A DNA stretch of 64,000 nucleotides, taken from NCBI GenBank assembly GCA_002269645.1, contig NIVC01001049.1, positions 248,001 through 312,000 on the forward strand, in the 5' to 3' direction. The position numbers were made by a program, and so were the translations under genes. Below, one piece after another: positions 21,451 through 50,562 of the stretch. A model generated the notes under the pieces. It was not told the DNA's origin, searched no databases, and worked only from the letters and a program-made list of their open reading frames with translations. This stretch comes from Macrostomum lignano. Lineage: Eukaryota. Each line of letters opens with the position of its first letter. Position 1 is the first letter of the stretch.

Positions 21451-21794
21451 CATCGCCTTGGCTTTATCCTTGGCTTCTACAGATCCATTTATTCAAACAG
21501 CAGTTTGATCTTGAATAATGGAAATAAATTTTAGACGATTTTAAAATTTTGTCTAATTCACACTGGTCCTGCTGATCCCTTGCGCCCTCCCCTCCTCCGC
21601 GCCGCGCTCCGCCGCATGCCGTGGGGTTTTTAACCTCTCCTATTTTCAGGCTTGGCCATGACGCTGCGTTCCTGCGCTGTTTGGAATTTTATCTAAACTT
21701 TTACAGCCTATCGAAAAAAATTTCTTTAGAAACTGGAGTCGGTTTGGGTGCCTGAACTTAAAGCAGAGAATTTAACGAACTTGAAAACTCTGAG

Positions 21795-22768
21795 AGGGCG
21801 TCAGCTACAGAAGAGGCGCCAGCTACAGAAGGGGCGCCAGCTACAGAGGGGCGCCAGCTACAGAGGGGCGCCAGCTACAGAAGGGGCGCCAGCTACAGAA
21901 GAGGCGCCAGCTACAGAAGAGGCGCCAGCTACAGAGGGGCGCCAGCTACAGAAGAGGCGCCAGATACAGAGTAGCGCCAGCTACAGAAGAGGCGCCATCT
22001 ACAGAGGGGCGCCAGCTACAGAGGGGCGCCAGCTACAGAGGGGCGCCAGCTACAGAAGGAGCGCCAGCTACAGAAGAGGCGCCAGATACAGAGGGGCGCC
22101 AGCTACAGAGGGGGCGCCAGCTACTGAAGGGGCGCCAGCTACAGAGGGGGCACCAGCTACAGAAGAGGCACCAGCTACAGAAGAGGCGCCAGCTACAGAA
22201 GAGGCGCCAGCTACAGAAGAGGCGCCAGATACAGAGGGGCGCCAGCTACAGAGGGGGCGCCAGCTACTGAAGGGGCGCCAGCTACAGAGGGGCGCCAGCT
22301 ACAGAAGGGGCGCCAGCTACAGAAGAGGCGCCAGCTACAGAAGAGGCGCCAGCTACAGAGGGGCGCCAGCTACAGAAGAGGCGCCAGATACAGAGTAGCG
22401 CCAGCTACAGAAGAGGCGCCATCTACAGAGGGGCGCCAGCTACAGAGGGGGCGCCAGCTACAGAAGAGGCGCCAGCTACAGAAGAGGCGCCAGCTACAGA
22501 AGGAGCGCCAGCTACTGAAGGGGCGCCAGCTACAGAGGGGGCGCCAGCTACAGAGGGGGCACCAGCTACAGAGGGGGCACCAGCTACAGAAGAGGCGCCA
22601 GCTACTGAAGGGGCGCCAGCTACAGAGGGGGCGCCAGCTACTGAAGGGGCGCCAGCTACAGAGGGGGCGCCAGCTACAGAAGAGGCGCCAGCTACAGAAG
22701 AGGCGCCAGCTACAGAAGGAGCGCCAGCTACAGAGGGAGCGCCAGCTACAGAGGGGGCGCCAGCTACA
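21795..22768. repeat. Minisatellite, 17-18-bp unit agctacaga(a/g)g(a/g)ggcgcc
   Basis: Direct tandem repeat; it explains the ORFs at 21748-22872. Confidence 0.96.
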
Positions 22769-24782
22769 GGGGGGTGTCTCCGCAGACTGGGATGTCTCTG
22801 ACCTGTTGTCAGCACTGCTGACATCGGGGCGTGCGGTGCAGAAAGAAAGAGAGAGAGTGAGAGCTGCTGCATCGGCCTAGAGACGTACGACTCTGATGAT
22901 AGTAGTATTCATATCATTTTAACGGTGTTTGCTTTCAAATCAAAATAGTCATTGACCATTTTGACGACTAATGCTCATGAATATTTTTAGCCCAGAATTC
23001 CATATACTAAAAATGAAAATGACAACTAAAATCTGTTCTATTTTTAGACAATTCACATATCTGCGCGATTTATATAAACAGACGCACATAGCACATCACG
23101 TGATTATTCTCTCTCACCCATTACGACTATTTAAGCCAGTTGTGGAAAGCGTAGAACTTACGTTTGACATTGAAAAGCTCGCTTGCTGTTTAAAAGAATC
23201 CTGCGGCTGTTTGAGTTGGCAGAAGATAGGCTTTTTTAAATTTGAGCATTTAAAACTACGATTATAATAAATCGTAGTTTAGAAACAAAGCAGTTTGTTA
23301 TTAAAGTCACAATAATCTTAATCAGGTAACTGACTAGAATTAGGCTATAAATTTTATCTATCAATTGCTCGCGAGTCTCATGTACGACGTACTTGCTTCA
23401 TTTTTGAGTAAAGAAATACACTGCAGTTTGGAAGTTTTCTTCAGTGAAACGGTGAAACTTGATTTCTTTGCTTAAATGAGCTTGGTTGGCTTTTTCATTG
23501 TTTTTGCGGCCAATAGTCTTATTACTCAATGTCTTTATTTTATATACTTTTTTATGTTTTATGCCGCGCAACTGCGGACTTTCGTGTCTTGGATTTAACT
23601 AGGTTAACTGGAACAAAAACGACTTTGTTAAAGAATTTAGAATTTTTATTAGGCAATTTATAATAGTCGTTGTCAATTGCCAGAACAGCAGAGGTCACAA
23701 CAGCCTTTAATTTGACCCTTCCGGCTCTCTTTTAGGCCTATCAGTTGCTTCTCAAATCCGACAGGTGAGCAAATCTTCCAGCATAAGCCTTCATCTCAAA
23801 GTTTTAATTAGTTGTAGCTACCCCTGATTTTGCAACTTCGAAACTGTTAGATTAAGATTATAGAAATAATTCCCACAAGACGCGTCAACATTTCGTATTG
23901 AGAACAAAAACGATTGTGTGACAAATGTTTTTAACGCCTTAAAAAGTAATTAAGTTTTTTTGTTCGATGAAGTCTGGTGAAAACGGTAAAAGTTTTATGA
24001 ATATTGGACATAATGGTAGATTGCGTAGTAGGTAAGGGACTGAAATAATGGCCAAACAAAGTCTATGGCACATAGAGGCCATTATTTCAGCATAGCGTAG
24101 TCTGACGGCCATTATTTCAGCGTGCCGGAAGCGGTCATTATTTCACACTTTTTATCACGCTTTAATTGGCTGTTTTGAGAGTTATTTTACCCATAGATGA
24201 CTGAGATGTGTGTCTTAGTTTGACCATAGACAACACTGTGATGAGTGCCGATTTCGTTTGCGTCTTGCAAGAAATCAGGAAAGTGGGTAGTACGAGTAAA
24301 AGCTATTTGTCTTGTCAAGCAACTATGGCTGGTGCATCTCGTCAAACAGCCCCGCTTATTAATTGGAATATCTTCTTGTCGATGACTGAACGAACCGTTT
24401 TTTCAGTGTATTCCAGAATTCCATGTAGACTGTTTGCGATTATTCTCATATGTCAGTTAATAAATGCATATTTAACTAATCGTTTATGGTTCAAACGCCT
24501 GCTAAAGCTGAAATAATGGCCAGTTGAGTTTGTCATTACACCAGGCTGTGCCTTATGGACAATGGCATGACACTAGTAACAGGCCAATTTTACCTAAACG
24601 AATCTCTAAAAATTTTTGTGCCAAAATGAGTCATGAGCAAGCTTCCGTGTTTTATGGACTCAGCACGCAGCTAAAAAGGAACATTGCAGCGTTTGATGAC
24701 AAAAACAGAGCCACACCCTTTCACAAAAACGCCTAAAGTTTTTAATAAAAGACTTCTCACTTTTCAGCAGGACACATGCGTC

Positions 24783-26022
24783 ATGTCAGAACTTCCAGAG
24801 CGAGTGTCGGGAGCCCGACCGGTCTCCGATCTGCCGGCTCACCTGCAGTGCAGCAGCTGCTCCAAGCCGCTCTTCAACGCCCGACAGACTCCGCACGGGT
24901 GCCGCCTGTGCCACGCCTGCGTCACTGGCCTGCTGCACGAGGTGGAGAAGCGGCCCTGTCCCGGACACACCGAGGCCTGCACACTCAGAGACCGCCACTC
25001 GGAGGAGGACGTTGGCGGCGGGGTCGAGACCGAGGTGAGCCGAGCTACCTGCTATCCCGACATAGCGACGAGACGCGAGGTCGCCAAGCTGCGAGTCCGC
25101 TGTCCGAACTGCGACGCCGGCTGCTCTGTCCAACTCGAATGGGCTCGCATGGACCAGCATGTGCAACAGAGCTGCGACTGGCACTCACTCCGCTGTGAGC
25201 AGTGCAAAGAGCTCATCCTGAAGAAGGACATGCAGCGACACACCAGCAGCGAGTGTCGCCACAGGAAGGAGACCTGCGACCTGTGCTCTCAGCTGGTCAC
25301 ACACAGCGAGATGGAGACCAGTCACAGGAATCTGCAGTCCGATGTGTGCTGTCCGAGATTCTCAGCTCGCTGTCCTCACTGCTCGGAGCGGAGCACACCG
25401 ATGGACAGGCGGGGATATGTTGCTCACCTGTCGGAGTGTCCCGAGAGAACGGTAGAATGCAAGTACTCTCACCTGGGCTGCGGGGAGATGGTAAGCAGGT
25501 CCGATCTGGAGAGGCACTACAGGGACAGCATGGACTCTCACCTTGAGCTCATGGACTCGAAGCTCAAGCAGGCAGCTGTTGTTCCATCGAATTCTGGTAA
25601 GCTTTTCTGTTGAATAATAGCAAAGATCAATGTGCGCTAATACATTAAGGTGGTTGGATGCGAATGTTTTGTTGGTCGCTATTGCAATAATGTTTAATTG
25701 TTCATTTCCAGCAGCTGCGGTCCCGCAGTCCTCTGTCGGTGCCGCAGCTCCCACCGCCACTACCGCCGACGGTCGCGAGGTGGCCGATGTGAAGCGGCGA
25801 GTCGGCAGCGTCTTCGAGCAGTTCAAGAAGCTGCAGGTCAACGTGGCGAACTGGGCTCACAGCACCATGGAGCTCGAGCAGCTGGCTGACAGGTTCGGAG
25901 GCGTCTCGCAGCTGCGGACTCTGCTGAGCGGACTGGACGAGCGGACAAGGAACGTCGAGCAGCTGCAGCAGCAGGTGCAGCAGCTCCAGCAGCAGGTGCA
26001 GCAGCTGCAACAGAGAGCTTGA
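24783..26022 (+). CDS. TRAF-like copy 2: RING + TRAF zinc fingers + coiled coil, no MATH domain (about 373 aa)
   Basis: Exons 24783-25596 and 25715-26022, phase 1. CSSC...QTPHGCRLCHAC; YPDIATRREVAKLRVRCPN..GC; repeated C-x2-C...H...C fingers; QQQVQQL heptads, then stop. Confidence 0.85.
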
Positions 26023-26409
26023 TGCTTAAAATTTTCAACGAGGAAAAAATGTGTGCATTCGATTGCTTCATTGCATCGTACCTAATCGGCCAGTATCGAT
26101 GTGATGTTTATGAATGAGAAAAAGCCTTTGACGATTATTATTCAGATAGAAATGTGAGTTTTTTCCAGCAAACTGATCAAATCCGAGTCGGGTTTTAAGT
26201 TTTGAATATTTAAAAACCTATTTAAAATTTTAAGCAGTTTTAAAACACTTTCCTGACTTCGTTGACAGAACATTTTCGTGCAATTGTTATCAACTAATAA
26301 ACAAGTGTTTTGATATCCTCAGAGTGTGCCCGACTCTGAAGTCCGCGCTGACCGCTTCAGTATATTCTGAATTTTTACATGTACTAACCTTCCAGTCGGC
26401 CTCTACGAG

Positions 26410-27424
26410 CTACTGAGGTCTCCAGTGTGCACTTGCCCACCTAAGTCTGCACTGAGGTCTCCAGTGTGCACTTGCCCACCTAAGTCTGCACTGAGGTCTC
26501 TCCAGTGTGTACTGCCCACCTAAGTCTGCACTGAAGCCTCTCCAGTGTGTACTGCCCACCTAAGTCTGCACTGAAGTATCTCCAGAGTGTACTGCCCACC
26601 AAAGTCTGCACTGAAGTCTCTCCAGTGTGCACTGCCCACCTAAGTCTGCACTGAAGTCTCTCCAGTGTGTACTGCCCACTTAAGTCTGCACTGAGGTCTC
26701 TCCAGTGTGTACTGCCCACCTAAGTCTGCACTGAGGTCTCTCCAGTGTGTACTGCCCACCTAAGTCTGCACTGACGTCTCTCCAGTGTGTACTGCCCACT
26801 TAAGTCTGCACTGAGGTCTCTCCAGTGTGCACTTGCCCACTTAAGTCTGCACTGAGGTCTCTCCAGTGTGTACTGCCCACCTAAGTCTGCACTGAAGCCT
26901 CTCCAGTGTGTACTGCCCACTTAAGTCTGCACTGAGGTCTCTCCAGTGTGTACTGCCCACCTAAGTCTGCACTGAGGTCTCTCCAGTGTGTACTGCCCAC
27001 CTAAGTCTGCACTGAAGTCTCTCCAGTGTGTACTGCCCACCAAAGTCTGCACTGAGGTCTCTCCAGTGTGTACTGCCCACCAAAGTCTGCACTGAAGTCT
27101 CTCCAGTGTGTACTGCCCACTTAAGTCTGCACTGAGGTCTCTCCAGTGTGTACTGCCCACCAAAGTCTGTACTGAGGTCTCTCCAGTGTGTACTGCCCAC
27201 CAAAGTCTGCACTGAAGTCTCTCCAGTGTGCACTTGCCCACCTAAGTCTGCACTGAAGTCTCTCCAGTGTGTACTGCCCACCTAAGTCTGCACTGAAGTC
27301 TCTCCAGTGTGTACTGCCCACCTAAGTCTGCACTGAAGTCTCTCCAGTGTGCACTGCCCACCTAAGTCTGCACTGAAGTCTCTCCAGTGTGCACTGCCCA
27401 CCTAAGTCTGCACTGAAGTCTCTT
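26410..27424. repeat. Minisatellite, 40-bp unit taagtctgcactgaggtctctccagtgtgtactgcccacc (about 25 copies, some 41 bp)
   Basis: Direct tandem repeats with no unique spacers. Confidence 0.96.
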
Positions 27425-27429
27425 CACTG

Positions 27430-27720
27430 CATTCCAAGTGCAGTAAGGTTAATTTGAGGCTAAATTGGAATCTCAGCTTGGCTCTGCTCGGCAATTAACA
27501 CCCTTGATGGCCAACCCCCAAGGTGCAGTAAAGTGTACATGCCTAAAGATAAATAAAGTGAGAATCCTGTGTGTGTGTGTGTGTGTGTGCCTGTGCAAAT
27601 GACTGCCTGCTCAGAGGAGTCGGCGGAATGGGCAGTAATGCCTCTCACCGGCTGTGTCACATTGTCGATTAAAGTGCAGCGCGCCAGGGTGCATACAGCC
27701 CCCCTGTCTCTACAAAAAGG
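27430..27720 (+). mobile_element. tRNA-derived SINE, copy B (5' truncated)
   Basis: Body homologous to 50-350 and to the reverse complement of 41320-41620; internal (TG)n expansion. Confidence 0.72.
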
Positions 27721-28690: not shown

Positions 28691-29432
28691 CTGATCACAT
28701 TTATATGTAGACTTTAAACCCTTTTATCGTCCATATCAAGTGTGGCCCAGTGAATGTTTATTGCATTATCTTCTGCTTAAGTAGTCCTTGCTATTAATAC
28801 TATTTTATTTCATGATTACTCATTACTGTTCCCCGCTCTCATCTTAAAAAAGCGATTTGTCGGCCAGCTATTCAGACGAGCATTCTAAATTTCTATTTAG
28901 AATGAGCGGCTTCATGCCTTCAGGCCTCGCCCAGAACTGAAAAAACACAGCTCACTTGTCCTGTTTATCTGGCACACGAGGCTTCACTCGTGGCCGGGTT
29001 TTGATTCTAAAAATAGAACTTGCGTTTCCAGACAGGCAATTTGACTGAAATAAATTGAATGTACACTGCATGTGTGGGACTGACAAGTACACTGGGTACG
29101 TGTTGGAGTTTACATTTGGAACAGGACGTATCTTATTTCCCTACACACACGTACGTTATAAGCTAGACTTTTAATAAGCAAGATATGTGATGTTCAAATT
29201 AATGGAATTTTCCACAACTAGCAGTCATTTCCGTCACGTGACTTTCAGTCATAGAAAGCATGATTGCTTTTTATTAAGTCTGTCAGGATAGCAAGAGCTG
29301 AAAAAAGCCGAGACTGGCTCGCATTGTTCACTAACAAGTGAACCTAAAGTAAATGCGACATCAGCCAAGTGAATTCCTGCAACAGCTTATCACAAAAGCA
29401 GGGTTTTATCCAGCGGCACCTCCAACTCATTG

Positions 29433-30188
29433 ATGGTCAGAAGCTTCCAGAACACCCAGCAGTCCTGGTGGGTCCCAGTCGGTCGCATCTCCAGCCAGGC
29501 TGAGGCTCTGTCCCAGGCTCAGCTGTTTGAGGCCCGTCATCCGGGACTAAAGTACACTGGCAGCTGGAACTCCGCCCCGAACTCAAAGCACTGCTCCATC
29601 GAGGTCGCCTCCGCGGGGTCAATTGTTGTCTCTCTGGGCGCCACTTCCAGCCGCAGAGATGCGCAAGACAAGGCTGAAGCCTTCATCGCAAAGCATCTGT
29701 ACCTGAAGTGGACAGCCAGCTGTTCTGAGCTCGGTTGGCTCCAGAACTTCCAGATTGTGGTCGAAGCTTTCCTGCCCACCGAGTGGCACATGAAGGAAGG
29801 CACAGTTGGGGCCTGCCTGCCAGTGACCACCAGCCTGCGGCTGAGGAACTTGACCTCCGAGAAGGTGACCAGGATTTCTGCAAGGGGCTTGGAGCCCAAC
29901 GACTGGGGCCAGCGGCGGCCCTGCCTCCAGTTCTCCGACAGACAGATCGTCGAGCGAGGCGTCCTGGAGAAGGAGCTGGACGTGAACTTCTGGAGCCACA
30001 CGGCCAAGCTGGCGGTCTGGCTCGGCTTCCAGAGCGGCCGCTACCTGCAGTTCCAGGTGAACAGCCGGGTGGCCATCGACAGCTCGGCAAAAAATCATTG
30101 GAAATTCTCCTCTGGAGCTGGCCTGTCGGTTTACCACAAGGTGGAGCCCGGCGCCCGCCTGCTGGAGGTGGTCGTGTGCGACTCATGA
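29433..30188 (+). CDS. Two MVL-like (mannan-binding lectin) repeats + uncharacterised beta-rich C-terminal domain, paralog 1 (251 aa, intronless CDS)
   Basis: VPVGRISSQAEALSQ...ARHPGLKYTGSW...SIEV follows the MVL pattern IPAGPLWSNAEAQ...AAHQGNFTGQW...VVEV recalled from memory; second weaker repeat follows. A clear paralog at 34854 supports coding status. Confidence 0.62.
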   Translation: MVRSFQNTQQSWWVPVGRISSQAEALSQAQLFEARHPGLKYTGSWNSAPNSKHCSIEVASAGSIVVSLGATSSRRDAQDKAEAFIAKHLYLKWTASCSELGWLQNFQIVVEAFLPTEWHMKEGTVGACLPVTTSLRLRNLTSEKVTRISARGLEPNDWGQRRPCLQFSDRQIVERGVLEKELDVNFWSHTAKLAVWLGFQSGRYLQFQVNSRVAIDSSAKNHWKFSSGAGLSVYHKVEPGARLLEVVVCDS

Positions 30189-30779
30189 CGCCGCACCGCT
30201 CAAAGACGCGCGGCACTTCTTGTACAAATGTTAATAGGAGCGTAAATTGCCTGACAACTGAATTATTGTAGTGTACGATTGATTGTATAATTTGTAAAAA
30301 ACGATAAGCATACAGTCATAATACTTGACATTGTATTGTACTGTACAGAATGTAAAAATAGAAACGAAAATACACCTGAGAGCCATGTTTTTTGCCACGG
30401 TGGCAGCTCTCCACAGCGCGGCTTTTCCATGGAAATGCCTTTGGCCATTGTACAGTTCCAACGAATCATGTGACAGAAATGTCTATTTTAAGCAGCCGCC
30501 AGCAAGGGCAGCCAGGCCAGGCGGACTGCGACCTGAAGTTGGCTGCCGAGCTCGAACTCAACTCAAGCAGGAAGCAAGTGCGTGGCTTCTCTGTTATAAT
30601 CATACTTCAGTATTTGCTGAAAGGGATAAAAAAATTAAGCTCAGCATCGCCTCAGCAACTGCCCTCCCATCGCCCACCCTGCCAGCCCCGGGTCTCCAGG
30701 TTGAAAGCAGCTCCAACAGAAAGTACATCTGCGGTTGGCGATTTTCTCAGAGACGAATTTGTGAATGTGAGAGTGGATA

Positions 30780-31270
30780 AACGCACGAGGATAACCATTT
30801 TGTTGAAAAATTTTGGTCAGAAAATTCACTTCTTGGTCAGGGTTAGTCCAGGTGTTGCAGACACTGAAAGCTCTGTGTAGCAGACATCTAATCAGGCCGG
30901 ATTTCCACTCTCTTGGACATAAAGCATTGAAGTTGAGGATGAGATTGGTAAATGTGCTTTTCCGAAAAACTTTGGTGGAGAGGGTTCCGCAATTAAAATC
31001 AATGTCCAGGTCAAGGAACGGAAGCCTCTGGTCGGAAGCAACCTCAGAAGTGAACTGGATGTTAGTGTGTGTAGAGTTGAGAGCGTCCAAGAAACAGTCA
31101 ATTTTGTCCTTTTTGTCGAAGATGGCGAAGGTGTCGTCAACATAACGCCTGTAGAATTTGGGTGCGCAGTCAAGGGTCATCCGATCGTTGGTTTCCCAAT
31201 GAGACAGGCAGACGTCAGCAAGGGTGGAGGCCAAGGGGCTTCCAAAGCGCATTCCCCCAACCTCAACACT
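30780..31270 (-). mobile_element. Penelope-like retroelement RT fragment
   Basis: FGSPLASTLAD, YRRYVDDTF, NIQFTSE...LPFLDL, TKVFRKSTFT and KSGLI...LLHRA...C are typical of PLE RT. Confidence 0.8.
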
Positions 31271-31971
31271 CAACTCCAACACAGTGGCGCGGGACAAACT
31301 CCGTGTGTTCTGAGGGAGGGGACACTGGATGTACATTATATACTTCAAACAGAAGTATAAAGCTATATATATATCGCTATCACTCCGTCCCTGGACTTTG
31401 CCTCTCAACTTTTGGACCAACAAACATGTGCTTCAAATATTGATTGAATTTGCACCCGAAATTCTGTCTATGGCCGTTTCTTTCGCTCCAAAATAAACCT
31501 GAACATGCACAGTATCGTGCGAAACGCGTCGTTCAATTGAATTATTTAATCTTGAAAGGAAAACTATTTTTAGTCCTGAAAACTGAATGCCCTGCCGAGT
31601 TGCCACCTCGCGAGCTTACAGAACCGCAGAAATGATAGAATCGTGCTAGAAATACATCAATCACGATCAATTTTAGAGTAGCCATTAGAAGTTTTCAGTA
31701 TTAGTGCAGACTTGATCTACTATAAATACCTAAAAAGCTATTAATACCAAAATTTCTTTAAATAAACTCAAATTTCTTATTTCTGCTTCATAAAAAACTA
31801 TGGAACTTTTAAAGCAGGCATAAATCAAATAAGGAGGCTGCCTTGTTCGACGCTTTCCGTCAATTTAAATATTCCGTCTTCGATCCCTCCCTATCTGGGC
31901 ACCACGCTCATAAAAAATATTTGCATGCCACTTTTAAATTGCAGTCTGACTCTTAGGACGTTTGGACAACA

Positions 31972-33188
31972 ATGTCGGAGCTGCCTTCGAGTGTGTCGGC
32001 TGCGAGGCCGGTCTCCGTTCTGCCGACTCACCTGCAGTGCAGCAGCTGCTCAAAGCCGCTCTTCAACGCCCGACAGACTCCGCACGGGTGCCGCCTGTGC
32101 CAGGCCTGCGTCACCGGCCTGCTGCACGAGGTGGAGAAGCGGCCCTGTCCCGGAAACACCGAGGCCTGCACACTCAGAGACCACCACTCGGAGGAGGACG
32201 CTGGCGGCGGGGTCGAGATCGAGGTGAGCCAGGCTACCTGCTTTCCCGACATGGCGACGAGACGCGAGGTCGCCAAGCTGCGAGTCCGCTGTCCGAACTG
32301 CGACGCCGGCTGCTCTGTCCAACTCGAATGGGCTCGCATGGACCAGCATGTGCAACAGAGCTGCGACTGGCACTCATTCCGCTGTGAGCAGTGCAAAGAG
32401 CTCATCCTGAAGAAGGACATGCAGCGACACACCAGCAGCGAGTGTCGCCACAGGAAGGAGACCTGCGACCTGTGCTCTCAGCTGGTCACACACAGCGAGA
32501 TGGAGACCAGTCACAGGAATCTGCAGTCCGATGTGTGCTGTCCGAGATTCTCAGCTCGCTGTCCTCACTGCTCGGAGCGGAGCACACCGATGGACAGGCG
32601 GGGATATGTTGCTCACCTGTCGGAGTGTCCCGAGAGACCGGTAGAGTGCAAGTACTCTCACCTGGGCTGCAGGGCGATGGTGCGCAGGTCCGATCTGGAG
32701 AGGCACTACAGGGAAAGCGTGGACTCTCACCTTGAGCTCATGGACTCGAAACTCAAGCAGACAGCGATAGCTCAGCAGAGTCCTTGTAAGAACTGGTGTC
32801 AAAATCAGTAATATAATCACGCAGAAGATGCTGTTCTGTGGTTTAATTTTTTTTCCTATTTTTAGCAGCCGCCGTGCCGCAGTCTTATGTAGGTTCCGCA
32901 GCTCCCGCCGCCGACGGTCGCGATGTGGCCGACGTGAAGCGGCGAGTCGGCAGCGTCTTCGAGCAGTTCAAGAAGCTGCAGGTCAACGTGGCGAACTGGG
33001 CTCACAGCACCATGGAGCTCGAGCAGCTGGCTGACAGGTTCGGAGGCGTCTCGCAGCTGCGGACTCTGCTGAGCGGACTGGACGAGCGGACGAGGAGCGT
33101 CGAGCAGCTGCAGCAGCAGGTGCAGCAGCTCCAGCAGCAGGTGCAGCAACTCCAGCAGCAGGTTCAGCAGGCGCAGAGCAGTCAATAG
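31972..33188 (+). CDS. TRAF-like copy 3, MATH-less
   Basis: Exons 31972-32785 and 32869-33188, phase 1; near-identical to copy 2. Confidence 0.85.
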
Positions 33189-33780
33189 TTTTGACTGATG
33201 AACTGAATTCACATTGGAAGCTGATGTATGAGATTTCGGCAGCGTGATGCACTCGAGTGTTGGTGCAATCCATGTCTCTTGGATCCTTTGACTTACAAAA
33301 TTCTGCTTTTGCGGTTAAGGAGACCTTCTATTGGAACTTTTTTGATGGCAGCTGAAGCCGAAGGTGCTGCAGTCCGGCGGAGCCGACTTGATGCTGTAGT
33401 AAGGCTCACAGCGATTTTTTTCGGCAAGGAAGACCAACCTTCCGTATTAGCTGATTATCCCACCACAGAGGCAGCCTCACCTGACAGAAGATCTATCCTA
33501 TACCCATCATTTTTCTCATTGTATAAAACCATTGGACTCGATTTTGTACATCTTATCCAATGAAATTTTGGAAATTTGCGACATTGCGACTTGTTATTGC
33601 ATTAGTTCGTGGGTCTGCGGTGGACTCTGAAAGAAATCAAGCCCCATCGGACCCTCAGACAGCGAGGAGGCGTGCCAGATCCTCTACCAGGTCCTCTGCT
33701 CGAATCTTTAACTTACAATTTATTCAGGAATCAAGCTTTCTGTTTCACTGCGTTTTCGTTATGTACTTCAAATTCTTTAG

Positions 33781-33846
33781 TGACCATGCATGGTCACTAT
33801 GCATGGTCACTATGCATGGTCACTATGCATGGTCACTATGCATGGC
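33781..33846. repeat. 13-bp tandem repeat tgcatggtcacta (about 5 copies)
   Basis: Direct repeat. Confidence 0.9.
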
Positions 33847-34853
33847 TCTGCAGCAGTCCGACCGTTTGGTAATTTTGTTTTTCATGCGCCCCCGGCTGCG
33901 GCTGAGCGTTGGCTGGTGGTAATGGTTTTTAATAGTCAACCTGCTTGATATTTCGCATACTATAATCTCTAAGGCAAAAATGCATTTTTGCATGGTTTGG
34001 AATGTGTCAAACAACTAAACCTAATATGGAAGTCGCGGTGTTACAGCGCCTGTTATCAGAGTTTTATCAGAAATAAATCAAACCCAACCAAAACCAAATA
34101 AGTAAGTCTCTTGGCTGCACGAGTTGCACCCGTGGCATGCGCGAATAATTTGTTTATACACGTATACGAGCTATAGCTCTATTTAAGAAAAGCAACCTTT
34201 GGATCCGGGCGTCTTCCGCCCGGTGCTAAATTTTTGGAGATCGAGGTGAGAACGCGTCTTTTGTAACTCTTGCAAAACTATTGGTTATTTTCTGTGCTAA
34301 ATCCACTAATGTAGACGAAGAAAAGATTGGTCAGATTACAAAAAAAGTGTTTTAATTACTACTCCTGGGTGAGAGTGGGCATTTTCACGAGAATTACTAG
34401 AAGTTACAGACTTGTCTCGACTTTTTGCTCATTTTGTTTTTCTGTCCTCACCTCTCTGTCTAGTTCAATCTGGTTCTTCTTATCATCGTCCCTTCCTTTT
34501 GCTCACTTCTGATTGGCTGTTCCCACTTACTAGCTTTATTCAATCAACCTTTGATTTCATAAAAGTCAAAAAGCCCAAGATTTGTTTTTGACCCCTTCTT
34601 TCTCTACAAATTCACATTAGTGTACAGATTGCTGATGCAGTGCTCGTGGCTCACTCACAGAGATTTGCTCGTATTGCTTAAACTGTCAGAGTCAGTGCAC
34701 CAGATCGAGCATTTTATATGGTCATCACGTCTGCTGCAAACCATGTTAAATACAAAACAGAGTGTAGTACTACTACAGGGAGTAGTACCCTGCAGTAGTA
34801 CATCGGGACTGCATTAATTTTGATTAGTACTCGCTCTCCTACTCACCCAGGAC

Positions 34854-35621
34854 ATGGTGCTCACCCTCCCAGTCCCGCCGGCCGTGCACTGGACGGTGCA
34901 GCTCGGCCCCGTCACCGACGCAGCGGACGCGAATTCAAAGGCGCTTGCCTACATGGCGGCGAACCCGGGCCTGAGGTGGCTGGGCTCCTGGAAGGCCATT
35001 CGGGACGGCAGGCTGACCGAGATTGAGGTCTCGTCTGAGGGGAGCATCGTGGTGTCCGTTGGAAGCACATCCGACAGTCGGGATGCGAAGAGCAAGACGG
35101 AGCTCTTCCTCAGAAAGAAGCCGTACCTAAAGTGGATCGGAGACTGCACAGCCGCTGGTTGGCACGAGAGCTTCGAGATCCTGGTGGAGCCGTATCTGCC
35201 CAGCCAGTGGCCTATGCAGGGGGGCACCGAGGGCTCGTGCCTGCCCGTGCAGATGCAGCTCAAGATAAAGAACGCGACGCCAGAGGCCGTTACTCGAGTT
35301 GTCGCGTGGGTCCTGGATGAAGAAGACTGGGGCGCCAGGTCGCCGTGCCGCCAGCTGACGGGGTGCAGAATCGAAGCCAGCCAGAGTCTGCAGAGGCAGC
35401 TGGACCTCAACTTCTGGCACTGGTCGGCCCAGTTCGGTCTGAGGCTAAAATTCCAGACTGGCCGGTGGCTTGAGTGCGAAGTCAACGGCAGAATTTCCAT
35501 AGACAGTGCCGCGGAAAAGAGCTGGAGCTGTAGGTCGGACCTCCCGGGTCTGTCCGCCTGCCCCCTGCCGCATCCGGACTCGCAGCTGCTGGAGCTGCTG
35601 GCAGTGCCTGAGTGCGTCTAA
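34854..35621 (+). CDS. MVL-like two-repeat protein, paralog 2 (255 aa, intronless CDS)
   Basis: VQLGPVTDAADANSK...AANPGLRWLGSW...EIEV. Colinear with 29433-30188 at roughly 40-45% identity by hand alignment (GSIVVS, YLKW, CLPV, DWGxRxPC, LDxNFW, FQxGR). Confidence 0.62.
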   Translation: MVLTLPVPPAVHWTVQLGPVTDAADANSKALAYMAANPGLRWLGSWKAIRDGRLTEIEVSSEGSIVVSVGSTSDSRDAKSKTELFLRKKPYLKWIGDCTAAGWHESFEILVEPYLPSQWPMQGGTEGSCLPVQMQLKIKNATPEAVTRVVAWVLDEEDWGARSPCRQLTGCRIEASQSLQRQLDLNFWHWSAQFGLRLKFQTGRWLECEVNGRISIDSAAEKSWSCRSDLPGLSACPLPHPDSQLLELLAVPECV

Positions 35622-36069
35622 ATGAACTCGGAACTCAGTGTCTGTGGCGCATTAATCAGATATAAAATATGCTCTCAGCAGTATTAGTAATCTCATTGCT
35701 CAATAATATAGAAAATATATTTTATACAGACACCCGAAGAGGGACCACTTTTGACGAAAATGTCAAAAACTTCTAGGGGTCATGAGCAAACGCTTGTAAA
35801 TTACCGAGGTTCCGTTAAATATTTAAAATAAATGGTCAATTCTACTGCTTTGTTGACTTTTTTTGCGCTTTTTATGTACAAATGTATACTCATGTGAGTA
35901 AGTAGCTCATGTACAAATGTATACAAATGTATACTACTGTACTCCATTCCATCCACTGTACAGAGTTACAATATAAAATTTGCTAAAAAGCTCAGCTAGT
36001 TCGGATTTTCACTAGAAAAAAAAAGGAATTCAGAAAATAATTTGAAATATCAAGTGCGCCTAAGCTTAG

Positions 36070-36450
36070 TACGTCAGGGAGGCGACGTCACAGGCAGCTT
36101 TTGAGACCGTCCTGCTTTACAATGTCGAGACCGGAAAGCTGACGGACTCGCTCGAACAGCAAGTTAACGTGGCGCGCTTCAAGACCAGCGACGAGCCAGT
36201 GAACAATGCGGCACCCAATCGCCACGCCGCCACATCATCTGCGCCCAGTCTCACTTCCCGCAGCCGGTGCAAGAGTTGCTGCTGCTGACACTGCAGTCAC
36301 CCTACCGGCGGGAACAGGCAGGCACTCGGAGTTTTGTCGACTGCCTGCTGGATGACGCCGGCGCCCCAGACTCAGGTTTGCTCAGAGACGCACCTTGTGA
36401 CGCTGCTTTATTAAGACCTGACAGCGTATTCTGTTTGCTGTTGTTGTGAA
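36070..36450 (+). mobile_element. Degenerate RTE-like LINE 3' fragment
   Basis: AAFETVLLYNVET..LTDSLEQQV resembles the post-RT VLLYxxETW motif of RTE-type LINEs. Confidence 0.5.
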
Positions 36451-37274
36451 CGCAACCTGAGCATAGTTATAATATGGAAAACTTTAATTGCACTGAAATT
36501 CTCGACAAGGACAGTCGTATCATCAGTTTCAGCAAAAATGGGGAGTTTGGGACAGACTTTAGAGCCGTCTTTGATTCTAATTTCTGCTAATTTTACATAC
36601 GGAATTCAGTTAAGACAACTTCAGAAAATTGCGCGTTATCTCCACATTTAGTAGAAGTGTTAGATTCCAAATCACTAATTTAGGTACCACGTAACTACGT
36701 CATTAGGCATGAGCTACTTACTCATTAAAGGCGATCAGGTACAAAGCACACGCTACACTAATGCGGTAGTACTGCTCGCATCACAAGTGGTCGTCTGCAT
36801 GCGTCATGCCCAAAATAAACTGTAGAGAAAAGCAACTAAAACGGAAACCAAATAGGATCGATCGTACAAGGTACAACTCAGTCTATTCAAGTGTGCGGTG
36901 AGCTACTAAGATATCTTTCCCACCCCAGAAGGACGAGTGTACAAAGCACTGTACACGGTACAAATAGTTAATTTGGCAACCAGCCGTGAAAGCAAATGGC
37001 AATTCTGGGGAAAGCCAGCAAGTACATTGTTGTATTTCCGTCAATTTTTGTTCACTGCCGTCATTCCCATCTACGCTCTTTTCTGCTTTCATTGCACGAT
37101 TGTGCATTAAGGCAAAATAGAGAATACGTACCGGATGCACCTTGCAAAATGAAGGCAAAGTCTCACTCTATTTCACTCACCCCACAACTAAAATTCTGTA
37201 TATATTTAGATTGACGGGTCCATGCTAACAATTCAATTATCAAGTTAACAAACTTCTCTGCTTCCAGTTCAGCC

Positions 37275-38501
37275 ATGTCCGAGCTGCCTTCAAGTGTGTC
37301 GGCAGCGAGGCCGGTCTCTGATCTGCCGGCTCACCTGCAGTGCAGCAGCTGCTCCAAGCCGCTCTTCAACGCCCGACAGACTCCGCACGGGTGCCGCCTG
37401 TGCCACGCCTGCGTCACCGGCCTGCTGCACGAGGTGGAGAAGCGGCCCTGTCCCGGACACACCGAGGCCTGCACACTCAGAGACCACCACTCGGAGGAGG
37501 ACGTCGGCGGCGGCGGCAGCGGCGGCGAGGTCGATATCGAGGTGAGCCAGGCTACCTGCTTTCCCGACATGGCGACGAGACGCGAGGTCGCCAAGCTGCG
37601 AGTCCGCTGTCCGAACTGCGACGCCGGCTGCTCTGTCCAACTCGAATGGGCTCGCATGGACCAGCATGTGCAACAGAGCTGCAACTGGCACTCACTCCGC
37701 TGTGAGCAGTGCAAAGAGCTCATCCTGAAGAAGGACATGCAGCGACACACCAGCAGCGAGTGTCGCCACAGGAAGGAGACCTGCGACCTGTGCTCTCAGC
37801 TGGTCACACACAGCGAGATGGAGACCAGTCACAGGAATCTGCAGTCCGATGTGTGCTGTCCATTGTTCTTAGCCTACTGCCCTCACTGTAGCTACAGAAG
37901 CAGGAAGATGGACAGGCGGGGATATGTTGCTCACCTGTCGGAGTGTCCCGAGAGACCGGTAGAGTGCAAGTACTCTCACCTGGGCTGCAGGGCGATGGTG
38001 CGCAGGTCCGACCTGGAGAGGCACTACAAGGAGAGCGTGGACTCTCATCTTGAGCTCATGGACTCGAAACTGAAGCAGGCAGCGATAGCTCAACAGAGTC
38101 CTGGTAAGAAATATAGTCGAAATCAGTAAAATGATCATCCAGGAGAAGCTGCCAGTATCAGATGCTTTCATTCTTGATAAAATATAATTTTCTCTTTTAT
38201 AACAGCTGCTGCCCCGCAGTCCTTCGTCGGTCCCACAGCGTCCACCGATGCTCATGAAGTCATCAACGTGAAGCGACGAGTCGGCAGCGTCTTCGAGCAG
38301 TTCAAGAAGCTGCAGGTCAACGTGGCGAACTGGGCTCACAGCACCATGGAGCTCGAGCAGCTGGCTGACAGGTTCGGAGGCGTCTCGCAGCTGCGGACTC
38401 TGCTGAGCGGACTGGACGAGCGGACGAGGAGCGTCGAGCAGCTGCAGCAGCAGGTGCAGCAGCTCCAGCAGCAGGTGCAGCAGCTACAGGAAAGGATTTA
38501 A
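37275..38501 (+). CDS. TRAF-like copy 4, MATH-less
   Basis: Exons 37275-38103 and 38206-38501, phase 1. Extended Gly linker and a divergent patch at 37861-37908. Confidence 0.85.
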
Positions 38502-39029: not shown

Positions 39030-40724
39030 TTACGCCACTGTTTTTGACACTTGCGTCACAGTCAGTGGTAGCGAACCCACGGAGGAGCAAGTCGCCTTCC
39101 GCCGGGAGCTCGCCAGCCTGTACAACAGGTCGACCAGCTCGGCGATGATCGCGATTGACAGCCCGCACCAGATGCCGCAGATGCTGCCCACCTGGCACAG
39201 GAAGACAGCCGGAGTGGTGATTGGAGTCTGGCGAAAGCTCTGCAGCATGAAGGGGTTTCTGCTTAGCTCGGCCATGAAGGGCCGTGGTCGAGAGACGTTG
39301 GAGCAAAGCTTCTCTGCTGAACTCTTCGAGCTGGCGTTGGTCAGCAGGGCGGCTTCGACATCCGAGATCCCGGCGCCCTGGTAGTTGACCTCGTAGATGG
39401 CCTGCTCCATCACGCAGCGCTGGAGATCATTCATGGGGACGTAGCTGGCACCCGAGACCGTGGCCGGGAACCAGAACTCTCGGCAGGAGCTCTCGCAGTT
39501 TTCATCGTAGACCTGAGACGAGCTCAGGACGTCGTCAACGCAGAAGTCCCTTTTGGAGAAAGCTTCAACTGAGTCGTCTGGTGTGAAAGCGTTGCATCGC
39601 ATCGTGCGGTCCGTCAGGTTCAACAGGCCGATGTCGAGAGTGCAGTTGCATCGCCGATGCACTTCTTTGCGAATCGCCTGCACTATGCACATCTCTTTTG
39701 TGTACTTAAAGTGCCGGTGCCGCACCGTTCCGTTGTCTACGCGGTACTCTGTCGACCATCCAGACAGGCTGTTGCACTTCAGCCTTTGCAGCCTACTCTG
39801 AGTGAACTTCACCTGGTTGTAGTAGTTGCTTGGCAGTAGCAGTCTGTTGTGGGTAAAGGGCACCTCTAACTCGCTGTGCAGGTCGAAAACAAAGCCATTG
39901 GTGGAAGTGAGACCGTCGATGGGGAATCCAGTTGAAAAATGATTGTCAGTGGACGAGTTGGTGGCGTTTGCTGCGACCGGAGCGGTCGGAATCACCAGAA
40001 CAATTGACTGGGTGAGCTTGGACATTGCGGCTGGCAAAGTCACTGTGTAGCAGCTTAGGTAGTCTGGATGGTGGAATGGCACGAGAGTGTAATCGCTGGG
40101 CACCAGCCAGATCACTCTTCCTGTCACCTGCAGCATGCGAATGATGGGCGCCCCGATGCTTGCTCCCAGACTGGAGACTTCGTGCAAACTTCTATTGGCC
40201 CGCGACAGGGTTCCCAGCACAGTGGCTATGTAGTTTCTGAAGCTCTCGATGAGCAGCAGGAAGCCTCTGTCAGCGCTTGGATGCTTCAGATAGAACTTCT
40301 GCACGCGATTGCGAACGTGGCTAGAAAATTCGGCCGGAGTGAGGACTCGGCCGGCCGACAGGTAACTGAGGGCGCTTTGACTCAAGCGCGTCCCGTCGCA
40401 GTAGGACACGCTGGGGAATGGCTGGTTCGCGCTGGAAGCAAAGTGCAGATCAACAACCAGGTCGCCCTTGACAAAGTTCAGAGTCAGCAGCGTCAGGTGG
40501 CAGGTCATGCCCACAAAGCAGGCCAGCACAAAGCAGGTCCAGAACGCGCGCAGCAGGGCGCTGTCTGAATGAACCGTCCGACGTAGCGATCGAATGGACG
40601 ATTCGGCAGCGAACTGGGTCAGGTACGAGGATATCGGTGAGGCGTGCTGCATTGAGGAGCGTGCGGTTGCACTTGCGGAGCCCAGCCTTTTTCTCTTAGA
40701 CAATCTACCCTGTCTTGAATCCAT
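39030..40724 (-). CDS. DEG/ENaC (amiloride-sensitive sodium channel family) subunit, intronless, 564 aa
   Basis: RAFWTCFVL (TM1), FPSVSYC, Cys-rich ectodomain (CIVQ...CNC...C...C..SC), FLCQVGSICGIWCGLSIAIIAELV (TM2 with GxS). Confidence 0.85.
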   Translation of the reverse strand: MDSRQGRLSKRKRLGSASATARSSMQHASPISSYLTQFAAESSIRSLRRTVHSDSALLRAFWTCFVLACFVGMTCHLTLLTLNFVKGDLVVDLHFASSANQPFPSVSYCDGTRLSQSALSYLSAGRVLTPAEFSSHVRNRVQKFYLKHPSADRGFLLLIESFRNYIATVLGTLSRANRSLHEVSSLGASIGAPIIRMLQVTGRVIWLVPSDYTLVPFHHPDYLSCYTVTLPAAMSKLTQSIVLVIPTAPVAANATNSSTDNHFSTGFPIDGLTSTNGFVFDLHSELEVPFTHNRLLLPSNYYNQVKFTQSRLQRLKCNSLSGWSTEYRVDNGTVRHRHFKYTKEMCIVQAIRKEVHRRCNCTLDIGLLNLTDRTMRCNAFTPDDSVEAFSKRDFCVDDVLSSSQVYDENCESSCREFWFPATVSGASYVPMNDLQRCVMEQAIYEVNYQGAGISDVEAALLTNASSKSSAEKLCSNVSRPRPFMAELSRNPFMLQSFRQTPITTPAVFLCQVGSICGIWCGLSIAIIAELVDLLYRLASSRRKATCSSVGSLPLTVTQVSKTVA

Positions 40725-43056: not shown

Positions 43057-44251
43057 ATGGCCTTTGAGCTGCCCCAGCGAGTGTCGGGAGCCCGGCCGGT
43101 CTCCGCTGTACCGGCCCATCTGCAGTGCAGCAGCTGCTCCAAGCCGCTCTTCAACGCCCGACAGACTCCGCACGGGTGCCGCCTGTGCCACGCCTGCGTC
43201 ACCGGCCTGCTGCACGAGGTGGAGAAGCGGCCCTGTCCCGGACACACCGAGGCCTGCACACTCAGAGACCACCACTCGGAGGAGGACGGCGGCGGCGAGG
43301 TCGAGATCGAGGTGAGCCAGGCTACCTGCTTTCCCGACATGGCGACGAGACGCGAGGTCGCCAAGCTGCGAGTCCGCTGTCCGAACTGCGACGCCGGCTG
43401 CTCTGTCCAACTCGAATGGGCTCGCATGGACCAGCATGTGCAACAGAGCTGCGACTGGCACTCACTCCGCTGTGAGCAGTGCAAAGAGCTCATCCTGAAG
43501 AAGGACATGCAGCGACACACCAGCAGCGAGTGTCGCCACAGGAAGGAGACCTGCGACCTGTGCTCTCAGCTGGTCACACACAGCGAGATGGAGACCAGTC
43601 ACAGGAATCTGCAGTCCGATGTGTGCTGTCCGAGATTCTCAGCTCGCTGTCCTCACTGCTCGGAGCGGAGCACACCGATGGACAGGCGGGGATATGTTGC
43701 TCACCTGTCGGAGTGTCCAGAGAGACCGGAAGAGTGCAAGTACTCTCACCTGGGCTGCAGGACGATGGTGCGGAGGTCCGATCTGGAGAGGCACTACAGG
43801 GAGAGCATGGACTCTCACCTTGAGCTCATGGACTCGAAACTCAAGCAGGCAGCGATAGCTCAGCAGAGTCCTGGTGAGATTTGCTTTCGAAGTGATGCGT
43901 CATGCAGAGGCTGCCATATTGAGATTTGGAATCACATTTGACAATTTTACAATCATTCATTCGCCAGCCGCCGCAGCTACCACCGGCACCGCCGACGGTG
44001 GCGAGGTGGCCGACGTGAAGCGGCGAGTCGGCAGCGTCTTCGAGCAGTTCAAGAAGCTGCAGGTCAACGTGGCGAACTGGGCTCACAGCACCATGGAGCT
44101 CGAGCAGCTGGCTGACAGGTTCGGAGGCGTCTCGCAGCTGCGGACTCTGCTGAGCGGACTGGACGAGCGGACAAGGAGCGTCGAGCAGCTGCAGCAGCAG
44201 GTGCAGCAGCTCCAGCAGCAGGTGCAGCAGCTGCAACAACCAAGGGCATGA
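43057..44251 (+). CDS. TRAF-like copy 5, MATH-less
   Basis: Exons 43057-43873 and 43968-44251, phase 1. The stop lies at the junction with the inverted fragment. Confidence 0.82.
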
Positions 44252-44258
44252 GCCTGGC

Positions 44259-44668
44259 CAGGTAGCCTGGCTCACCTCGACCTCGCCGCCGCTGCCACCG
44301 CCGCCAGCGTCCTCCTCCGAGTGGTGGTCTCTGAGTGTGCAGGCCTCGGTGTGTCCGGGACAGGGCCGCTTCTCCACCTCGTGCAGCAGGCCGGTGACGC
44401 AGGCGTGGCACAGGCGGCACCCGTGCGGAGTCTGTCGGGCGTTGAAGAGCGGCTTGGAGCAGCTGCTGCACTGCAGATGGGCCGGTACAGCGGAGACCGG
44501 CCGGGCTCCCGACACTCGCTGGGGCAGCTCAAAGGCCATTTGAATTTTTTGGTGCGATGCTGATCCAACTAGCTTTCGTTTTGAGCGTCGAGTTTAAATT
44601 GTTTTGCTTAGGTATGCGGTGGTACCCGCTATCTTTAGGTGGATATTAGATTCTCTTACTCGGCTGTA
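44259..44668 (-). pseudogene. TRAF-like copy 6: inverted 5' fragment (upstream region + RING only)
   Basis: ATG at 44539 (MAFELPQRVSGARP...). Homology stops at 44259; upstream sequence resembles 42893-43056. Confidence 0.85.
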
Positions 44669-49350: not shown

Positions 49351-50562
49351 TTAGGGCCGCTGCTGTTGCACCTGTTGTTGGAGCTGCTGCACCTGCTGCT
49401 GGAGCTGCTGCACCTGTTGCTGCAGCTGCTCGACGCTCCTCGTCCGCTCGTCCAGTCCGCTCAGCAGAGTCCGCAGCTGCGAGACGCCTCCGAACCTGTC
49501 AGCCAGCTGCTCGAGCTCCATGGTGCTGTGAGCCCAGTTCGCCACGTTGACCTGCAGCTTCTTGAACTGCTCGAAGACGCTGCCGACTCGCCGCTTCACA
49601 TCGGCCACCTCGCGACCGTCGGCAGCTGTGGGGGCGGAATGTGCGGCACCGACAGAGGACTGCGGGACCGCGGCTGCTGAAAAATGAATAAAAATGTAAA
49701 ATGTGATTCAAAATCTGAATATGGCAGCCTCTGCATGACGCATCACTTTGAAAACAAATCTCACCAGGACTCTGCTGAGCTATCGCTGTGTGCTTGAGTT
49801 TCGAGTCCATGAGCTCAAGGTGAGAGTCCACGCTCTCCCTGTAGTGCCTCTCCAGATCGGACCTGCGCACCATCGCCCTGCAGCCCAGGTGAGAGTACTT
49901 GCACTCTACCGGTCTCTCGGGACACTCCGACAGGTGAGCAACATATCCCCGCCTGTCCATCGGTGTGCTCCGCTCCGAGCAGTGAGGACAGCGAGCTGAG
50001 AATCTCGGACAGCACACATCAGACTGCAGATTTCTGTGACTGGTCTCCATCTCGCTGTGTGTGACCAGCTGAGAGCACAGGTCGCAGGTCTCCTTCCTGT
50101 GGCGACACTCGCTGCTGGTGTGTCGCTGCATGTCCTTCTTCAGGATGAGCTCTTTGCACTGCTCACAGCGGAATGAGTGCCAGTCGCAGCTCTGTTGCAC
50201 ATGCTGGTCCATGCGAGCCCATTCGAGTTGGACAGAGCAGCCGGCGTCGCAGTTCGGACAGCGGACTCGCAGCTTGGCGACCTCGCGTCTCGTCGCCATG
50301 TCGGGAAAGCAGGTAGCCTGGCTCACCTCGATCTCGACCCATCGTCCCCCTCGCCTCTGAGTGTGCAGGCCTCGGTGTGTCCGGGACAGGGCCGCTTCTC
50401 CACCTCGTGCAGCAGGCCGGTGACGCAGGCCTGGCACAGGCGGCACCCGTGCGGAGTCTGTCGGGCGTTGAAGAGCGGCTTGGAGCAGCTGCTGCACTGC
50501 AGGTGAGCCGGCAGATCGGAGACCGGCCGGGCTGCCGACACACTTGAAGGCAGCTCGGACAT
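49351..50562 (-). pseudogene. TRAF-like copy 7, frameshifted in the Gly linker
   Basis: Exons 50562-49765 and 49673-49351. A deletion/frameshift at about 50335-50355 gives TGA at 50323; the rest is intact in the next frame. Confidence 0.82.

Follow-up and report, generated by a model that had tools for sequence, protein, structure and literature searches.

A 64,000-nucleotide stretch of the genome of the flatworm Macrostomum lignano (assembly GCA_002269645.1, contig NIVC01001049.1, positions 248,001 to 312,000 of the forward strand; hereafter the window, to whose first letter all coordinates refer) contains two genes, lec1 and lec2, which belong to a small, undescribed metazoan protein family. 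Their products combine a pair of N-terminal repeats, which are diverged and distant homologs of the Microcystis viridis lectin (MVL), with a C-terminal domain that is confidently predicted to be a β-sandwich with a fold nearest to those of the aegerolysins and actinoporins. On balance, we lean towards the view that they represent a new lectin/membrane-binding family of metazoans with an effector or targeting role, whose two old paralogs in this genome are embedded in an array of TRAF-like genes that are being homogenised. The first-pass annotation of the locus, which was made from the sequence alone, had instead read the alternation of lectin and TRAF-like genes as a twofold repeat of a [lectin-TRAF] unit, encoding a cytosolic glycan sensor together with its signaling adaptor.

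Both genes, lec1 (29433-30188, + strand, 251 aa) and its paralog of like architecture, lec2 (34854-35621, + strand, 255 aa), have intact coding sequences (CDS) that are intronless, as had been claimed. Their amino acid identity is 43% (237 aa aligned, E 3e-71), and the window contains no further copy of the lectin. The encoded proteins, of about 28 kDa, are leaderless and comprised of two modules; the lack of a signal peptide, also part of the earlier description, is upheld in that the sequences show no hydrophobic leader and the homologs all begin directly at the first MVL strand.

The repeats were delineated with an independent MVL hidden Markov model (HMM), built solely from Pfam-positive short MVL proteins and applied to the entire window translated in all six frames. 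It matched precisely four segments and nothing else: the first repeats of lec1 (aa 14-58, 29472-29606, + strand; 18.4 bits, independent E-value 5e-7) and lec2 (aa 15-59, 34896-35030, + strand; 28.2 bits, independent E-value 4e-10), and the strongly degenerate second repeats of lec1 (aa 66-111, 29628-29765, + strand; 8.1 bits, over part of the repeat only) and lec2 (aa 67-113, 35052-35192, + strand; 6.2 bits). Two repeats of about 50 aa per open reading frame (ORF), as initially described, are thus recovered by this model. BLASTP comparisons also uncover the internal repeat in lec1 (repeat 2 versus repeat 1, E 3e-6), and detect none in lec2.

The N-terminal halves are homologs of MVL, though distant ones, and the description of these genes as MVL-like is vindicated in this sense by an unbiased profile search, by the match to the MVL structure and by the predicted topology. 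A word-indexed search initiated with lec2 alone found no homolog, and phmmer with the same protein against the PDB returned only chance-level matches to pleiotrophin/midkine (E 0.065 or worse). A HMMER profile of lec1 and lec2, run exhaustively against 1.84 billion representative proteins, retrieved 20 matches, three of which are full-length relatives (E 1e-39 to 4e-22). The remaining 17 consist of MVL repeats in tandem (E 2.8e-13 to 8e-4) and mostly score above the threshold of the Pfam MVL family (PF12151), with repeats of the type VEVGPIWNQxDAExKAxxYIxxHPxxxWTGxWxTTxPGxMSVIxV. A profile of the six-member family against the PDB had MVL (1zhq) as its sole significant match (E 1.4e-6, spanning both repeats), and lec1 matches MVL directly in BLASTP (E 2e-4).

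Structure prediction, which had been proposed as a check of the MVL relationship, agrees with it in topology. The AlphaFold2 model of lec1, computed from a six-sequence alignment, has a mean predicted local distance difference test score (pLDDT) of 81.4 and a predicted template modelling score (pTM) of 0.70. It contains the β-α-β-β unit twice (strand 11-17, helix 22-35, strands 39-47 and 54-60, followed by strand 64-70, helix 74-87, strands 91-100 and 105-112), and the same unit is predicted for repeat 2 of lec2 in a separate AlphaFold2 model. Foldseek aligned the lec1 model with 1zhq_A (E 1.4e-3, probability 1.00, 21% identity over 114 columns) at a TM-score of just 0.43 and a root-mean-square deviation of 8.5; the relative orientation of the two MVL domains in this model probably differs from that in 1zhq.

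The conservation pattern of the family points to a marked alteration of the repeats in the window. We took as signature positions the 15 at which 80% or more of the family repeats agree, represented by the motif GP[IL]W[NS][NQ] ... [WF]TGxWxT[TV], which presumably lines the sugar cleft. The repeats of lec1 and lec2 retain 4 to 8 of these 15 (four in repeat 2 of lec1 and five in repeat 2 of lec2), as against 9-10 in MVL itself and a mean of 13.6 in the other members. The signature Trp, Asn and Thr-Thr are gone from all four repeats, and the Gln is left only in repeat 1 of lec1; hence, the previously remarked loss of the Trp from GPLW extends to the Trp of GP[LI]W in every repeat. With these residues missing throughout, canonical sugar binding is doubtful.

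The C-terminal ~125 aa of each ORF form a separate domain, which the first-pass annotation did not mention. In lec1 (aa ~128-251, 29814-30185, + strand) it is modelled with pLDDT of ~76-97 per 10-residue block, most blocks exceeding 85, and the corresponding region of lec2 (35238-35618, + strand) aligns with it. The best PDB matches of the lec1 model in Foldseek searches are ostreolysin A (OlyA; E 4.7e-5) and Cry34Ab1 (E 1.1e-4, TM-score 0.63), followed by actinoporins (E 3e-4 to 6e-3, TM-score 0.45-0.55), with IP-1A and bryoporin also matching, and more weakly by fungal fruit-body lectins. The top 19 PDB matches (E 4.7e-5 to 3e-2, TM-score to target 0.46-0.63) all fall among the aegerolysins, actinoporins and fungal fruit-body lectins, apart from MVL itself, which stands at rank 8 and aligns with the N-terminal half. 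An independent, earlier and poorer model of lec2, of low confidence, returned the same fold families. No actinoporin-type N-terminal amphipathic helix is present in the lec1 model, where the MVL pair and a disordered linker (120-126) precede the sandwich. Nor did the window show a gene for a MACPF or Toxin_10 partner. We also discarded the possibility that the sandwich has a MATH-like fold, as none of the top 50 Foldseek matches is a TRAF/MATH structure.

A second locus of M. lignano informs on the integrity of these genes. Contig NIVC01000672.1 of the same assembly (loci L006 and L007) is colinear with positions 23031-64000 of the window and has the same gene order, namely TRAF, lec1, TRAF, lec2, TRAF, ASC on the - strand, and TRAF. 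It is a duplicate of the same region, either a haplotig or a homeolog, and therefore provides no independent test of the gene arrangement. Both lectin ORFs are intact at each locus and equal in length to their counterparts at the other. The two versions of lec1 are 96% identical, with 13 synonymous and 11 non-synonymous differences (synonymous divergence, dS, 0.077; ratio of non-synonymous to synonymous divergence, dN/dS, 0.25), and those of lec2 are 96.5% identical, with 16 synonymous and 9 non-synonymous differences (dS 0.093; dN/dS 0.17). Between lec1 and lec2, dS is ~1.44 and dN/dS (omega) 0.36, with similar values across both protein halves, indicating an old duplication with selection maintaining both copies. 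Judged by these substitution patterns, lec1 and lec2 are real genes under purifying selection. Nucleotide identity between the two loci is strongly mosaic (90-99.4%), reaching 99.3-99.4% in some blocks and falling to 90-94% around the lectins and one of the TRAF-like genes (copy b, see below), and the lectin dS of 0.08-0.09 far exceeds the divergence of the flanking blocks.

Full-length relatives outline the wider family. The proteins P0023/P0001, P0002, P0003 and P0035 (439-499 aa) have the same two MVL repeats and sandwich, followed by a helical extension of ~240 aa that has no match in Pfam or, by phmmer, in the PDB. In P0023, P0002, P0003 and P0035 this extension, from about residue 250 to the end, shows hydrophobic hairpin-like and tail segments, and it may be a membrane-inserting module. 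The long forms keep the canonical signature in at least one repeat, whereas the Macrostomum proteins keep it in none. Each of the long forms is encoded by a single ORF, on contigs that hold little coding sequence and have 36-43% GC. These contigs look metazoan, given an ASC/ENaC-family fragment on one (L005) and a LINE-type (long interspersed nuclear element) reverse-transcriptase tail on another. The former is a last-exon-like ORF (51 bits; L005:5867-6202, + strand) lying 2.5 kb downstream of P0002, and in the window an ASC ORF (39030-40724, - strand) sits 3.4 kb downstream of lec2; this proximity could be microsynteny or coincidence. Apart from the ASC fragment, a Pfam scan of the small ORFs beside the homologs was uninformative, and a scan of metagenome contigs for further loci gave 86 pattern matches and no relative. 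A protein from another eukaryote (P0005, an ENA entry of 318 aa, outside the window) has three MVL repeats fused to a Sina-type RING (PF21362, 40.5 bits, cut-off 29.3), and is hence a natural fusion of MVL domains with a RING E3 module.

Several observations weigh against regarding lec1 and lec2 as functional members of a lectin/membrane-binding family. The second repeats of both proteins are barely detectable by sequence, at 8.1 and 6.2 bits. The Pfam MVL model (PF12151, gathering threshold 25 bits) misses both proteins, which have no match to any Pfam family at E <= 1; of the profile comparison with Pfam that had been envisaged, only the transitive route, through the profile that leads to Pfam-positive MVL proteins, succeeded. 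Given the vanished sugar-site signature, lectin activity may have been lost altogether. The resemblance of the C-terminal domain to aegerolysins and actinoporins comes from a predicted structure, based on an alignment of six sequences, with moderate TM-scores (0.46-0.63); when the C-domain family was compared with ostreolysin A by hhalign, the probability was 0.3%, and the six C-domain sequences have no Pfam match at E <= 10, including to the aegerolysin (PF06355) and actinoporin (PF06369) families. Membership in the aegerolysins by sequence was therefore rejected, and for want of a sequence-level link we describe the domain as folding like the aegerolysin/actinoporin sandwich rather than as belonging to either family. 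The short Macrostomum forms also do without the helical tail seen in the long homologs, no downstream exon encoding it having been found in the window, so that the function of the family may not carry over to them. Finally, neither lec1 nor lec2 is among the called genes of the source assembly contigs that were inspected (NIVC01000672.1 at L006 and L007, and NIVC01001049.1 over window positions 33841-60565, L008, where contig and window are 100% identical).

The last of these points concerns a locus that is mis-annotated on record. The 564-aa ASC ORF is likewise missing from the gene calls on L006, L007 and L008, and the annotated NCBI TRAF models on these contigs span 9-13 kb across neighbouring genes, lectins included. 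The sole public trace of the lectins is UniProt A0A1I8GMY3, in which two TRAFs are joined to the first 92 aa of lec2 (98% identity) and which, being truncated and fusing two TRAFs, is probably a prediction artefact; exact-sequence look-ups for lec2 and the ASC ORF found no record. With the lectins and the ASC gene uncalled and the TRAF models chimeric or 9-13 kb long, re-annotation is needed before an expression study can test a link to the TRAFs.

The genes flanking the lectins form an array of six TRAF-like copies and a fragment, as counted by tblastn, on both strands. Spliced products could be modelled for copy a (24783-26022, exons 24783-25596 and 25712-26022, + strand, 374 aa; found by tblastn), copy b (31972-33188, exons 31972-32785 and 32866-33188, + strand, 378 aa) and copy c (37275-38501, exons 37275-38103 and 38206-38501, + strand, 374 aa). 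The others are copy d (43066-44240, + strand; tblastn 94%, blastn), two minus-strand copies, one represented by its exon 1 (19560-20387; tblastn 93%) and the other at 49363-50562 (tblastn, blastn), and a minus-strand 5' fragment of 75 aa (44306-44530; tblastn). Copies b and c contain the TRAF-type zinc finger (zf-TRAF, PF02176), which scores 43.0 bits in the ORF of copy b (40.9 in its spliced product) and 45.6 bits in copy c, against a Pfam threshold of 27, and the 374-378 aa products combine TRAF zinc fingers with a RING-like Cys/His pattern and a terminal Q-rich coiled coil. In copy b, which equals the NCBI model BOX15_Mlig029665g1 in length, the pattern C-x2-C-x11-H-x-C-x2-C-x2-C-x12-C-P is visible, but there is no Pfam RING match. 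The earlier characterization of these proteins as MATH-less TRAFs holds, in that the coiled coil forms the end of the 378-aa spliced protein and tblastn with the MATH (TRAF-C) domain of P0056 finds none in the window. P0056 itself is a paralog from elsewhere in the M. lignano genome, which has the MATH domain and is ~50% identical to the array proteins. All database relatives of the TRAF-like protein are from M. lignano, and the MATH-less array is lineage-specific. Interleaved in it is the ASC/ENaC-family channel ORF mentioned above (564 aa; PF00858, 103.7 bits).

The organization of this array also accounts for the alternation of lectins and TRAFs. The initially reported order of lectin1, TRAF3, lectin2 and TRAF4 (the TRAFs being copies b and c), with their + strand coordinates, agrees with the ORF list and Pfam matches, and the periodicity of ~5.3-5.4 kb is real, the two lectins starting 5421 nt apart and the two TRAFs 5303 nt apart. 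With copy a included, there are five + strand genes in succession, TRAF-lec1-TRAF-lec2-TRAF. However, the framing of this run as a repeated module is not sustained. When the two supposed units are compared, the TRAF gene body is 89.8% identical over 1218 nt and the lectin CDS 64% identical over 433 nt, and blastn finds no alignment between the spacers or flanks; a recently duplicated 5.3-kb [lectin-TRAF] unit was thus rejected. The TRAF copies, in turn, are alike from the ATG to the end of the CDS, intron included, with gene bodies 87-98% identical by blastn. Their identity is mosaic, one block of 300 nt being 98-99% identical in four copies and the adjacent block 77-93%, which is the pattern of gene conversion. 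As the ASC gene is interleaved in the same fashion, alternation with TRAFs is to be expected of any gene lying in the array, and the interleaving of the lectins follows from two old paralogs being situated inside it. A pyrimidine-rich CAG lies 3-37 nt before the ATG in nearly every gene of the array, within upstream sequences that are otherwise unrelated (24722-24782, 29372-29432, 31911-31971, 34793-34853 and 37214-37274, and for the minus-strand copies near 20393 and 50562).

The arrangement might nevertheless reflect transcriptional coupling only, the same-strand run forming one polycistronic unit or several, resolved by spliced leader (SL) trans-splicing, with its products co-expressed but not physical partners, which we consider rather unlikely. 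The SL trans-splice acceptor motif of M. lignano is [T/C]TNCAG (PMC8629364). Among the TRAF-like genes, copies a, b and c, out of four on the + strand, and one of the two on the minus strand have an exact match to it 7-37 nt before the ATG (TTTCAG at 15 nt in copy a), but the lectins have only near matches, ATCCAG 19 nt upstream of lec1 and ACCCAG 3 nt upstream of lec2. The polyadenylation-type signals AATAAA and ATTAAA are absent within 800 nt downstream of lec1 and of TRAF copy b, a further point in favour of this reading. On the other hand, the intergenic distances of 1.65-3.4 kb, which are partly transposable element or satellite sequence, exceed the repeat-adjusted operon cut-off of 1 kb used for this species (PMC8629364). 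The public gene model A0A1I8GMY3 does splice a TRAF exon onto the lec2 acceptor, but as a truncated chimera of two TRAFs it is, as noted, a probable artefact.

The proposal that lec1 and lec2 are cytosolic glycan sensors, each acting with its downstream TRAF-like gene as a sensor/adaptor module of innate immunity, appears distinctly improbable. It draws on the five consecutive same-strand genes, on the conservation of their order at the second locus, on the leaderless state of the lectins, which makes a cytosolic location possible, and on the MVL-RING fusion P0005, which hints, in the manner of a Rosetta-stone protein, that MVL domains are able to cooperate with RING E3 modules. Yet the TRAF copies exceed the lectins in number, four copies and the fragment having no lectin directly upstream, and the ASC gene is interleaved just like the lectins. 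The second locus, with 90-99% identity, is the same region duplicated. The ages of the presumed partners are discordant, with dS of ~1.4 between the lectin paralogs and differences of 2-13% among the TRAF copies, which are being homogenised. When the pairing was followed beyond the window, no TRAF neighbour of a lectin homolog was found on contigs L001-L005, including the metazoan-looking L004 and L005, and there is no lectin within 10 kb of the MATH-containing TRAF P0056, a locus of the ancestral type. The decayed sugar-site signature and the sandwich domain, which was not considered in the original proposal and suggests membrane binding instead, also leave it unsupported.

A more elaborate version would merge these two ideas into a co-transcribed, SL-resolved innate-immune cassette, in which a leaderless glycan/lipid binder detects damaged or foreign membranes in the cytosol and then passes the signal on to a TRAF-like E3 adaptor made up of RING, zinc fingers and coiled coil, with the lectin replacing the missing MATH domain in trans and P0005 representing a single-chain version elsewhere; as a joint claim we regard this as very improbable.

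Lastly, recent horizontal acquisition of the lectin ORFs from cyanobacteria or other bacteria, or their being decaying, functionless relics, is extremely improbable, for although the genes are intronless and unannotated in the source assembly, the sugar-site signature is decayed, MVL itself, the founder of its family, comes from a cyanobacterium and the matches include bacterial-type MVL repeat proteins with leader-like N-termini (e.g. P0012 and P0014), the closest relatives have eukaryote-type repeats (HP.L.WTG.W.TT) or the full architecture, likewise intronless, on metazoan-looking contigs, the search of 1.84 billion representatives brought up no bacterial protein with the full architecture, and the paralogs, which are old (dS ~1.4), have both kept their ORF intact at either locus and evolve under purifying selection. 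Thus, with regard to the horizontal acquisition suggested earlier, a recent transfer from cyanobacteria is unlikely, but the MVL domain may have spread between the domains of life in the distant past.

The remainder of the window consists of transposons and satellites. A retroelement ORF (10021-11946, - strand) encodes an aspartyl protease and integrase zinc-binding and core domains, together with a SCAN match of 52.4 bits (cut-off 27). SCAN domains have mostly been described in zinc-finger proteins of vertebrates and in the gypsy-like progenitors of these proteins, and such a match in a flatworm element is unexpected. A long terminal repeat (LTR) retrotransposon at 14125-18699 has 300-nt terminal repeats that are 100% identical and an intact gag-pol ORF of 1322 aa, and is therefore probably a recent insertion. 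Satellite arrays are located at 26313-27574, 1039-1560, 12785-13650, 21759-22840 and 54763-55700, with periods of 40, 11, 11, 18 and 25 nt, respectively; the 40-nt array sits between TRAF copy a and lec1, and its copy number differs from that at the NIVC01000672.1 locus.

Returning to the view that lec1 and lec2 are members of a lectin/membrane-binding family lodged in a TRAF-like array undergoing homogenisation by gene conversion, a mode of action may be envisaged from the architecture of the proteins. Extrapolating from its predicted fold class, we infer that the C-terminal sandwich would dock the protein onto a membrane lipid or glycoconjugate, like its structural relatives, and the MVL pair would supply a second, probably altered, ligand-binding surface. 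Together, they might constitute a membrane- or glycan-targeting effector, or a targeting subunit, in defence or in prey/microbe recognition, rather than a signaling receptor. To our knowledge, MVL has been studied almost wholly as one cyanobacterial antiviral lectin. The present family shows that diverged MVL domains also exist in animals, where they are joined to a sandwich predicted to be aegerolysin/actinoporin-like and membrane-binding, with longer members adding a helical hydrophobic tail. If the fold and the ligand binding hold true, it would furnish a new lectin/membrane-binding architecture in invertebrate effector biology, and a eukaryotic context for MVL-type domains.

Comparison with known systems brings out both the affinities and the peculiarities of these proteins. 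The flanking genes resemble the TRAF family in their coiled coil and in TRAF-type zinc fingers that score above the Pfam threshold, but differ from it in lacking a MATH/TRAF-C domain and a RING recognised by Pfam. MVL itself has 113 aa organised into two 54-residue domains (PMC3407925). Like lec1 and lec2, MVL (PDB 1ZHQ/1ZHS, PF12151) has tandem domains of ~50-54 residues, the β-α-β-β topology that is predicted in the Macrostomum proteins and no signal peptide, and the profile match between them stands at E 1.4e-6. In contrast to them, it lacks a following β-sandwich of 125 aa; the lec1 and lec2 repeats, for their part, are without the Trp, Asn and TT of the signature and are missed by the Pfam model, and their host is an animal.

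The aegerolysins (ostreolysin A/pleurotolysin A, Cry34Ab1 and RahU; PF06355) provide the best structural match for the C-terminal domain of lec1, and are comparable in being leaderless and of ~120-140 aa, though they have no detectable sequence similarity to it and lack the fusion to MVL repeats. Aegerolysins are binders of membrane lipids and usually work in concert with a second protein. Actinoporins (FraC, sticholysin II, equinatoxin II, Fav and bryoporin) share the predicted β-sandwich core, which the fungal fruit-body lectins XCL and SRL match more weakly. Actinoporins differ in the pore-forming N-terminal amphipathic helix, in place of which lec1, itself without a Pfam match, has the MVL pair; nothing indicates that the short Macrostomum forms make pores. 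Parallels in design are the chimeras of lectins and pore-formers, such as the jacalin-aerolysin natterin-like proteins and the ricin-B-type CEL-III and LSL, which couple a carbohydrate-binding module with a membrane-active β module. These share their logic with lec1 and lec2 but employ different modules, the Macrostomum proteins uniting a lectin module of the MVL type with a sandwich that is predicted to be aegerolysin-like rather than aerolysin-like.

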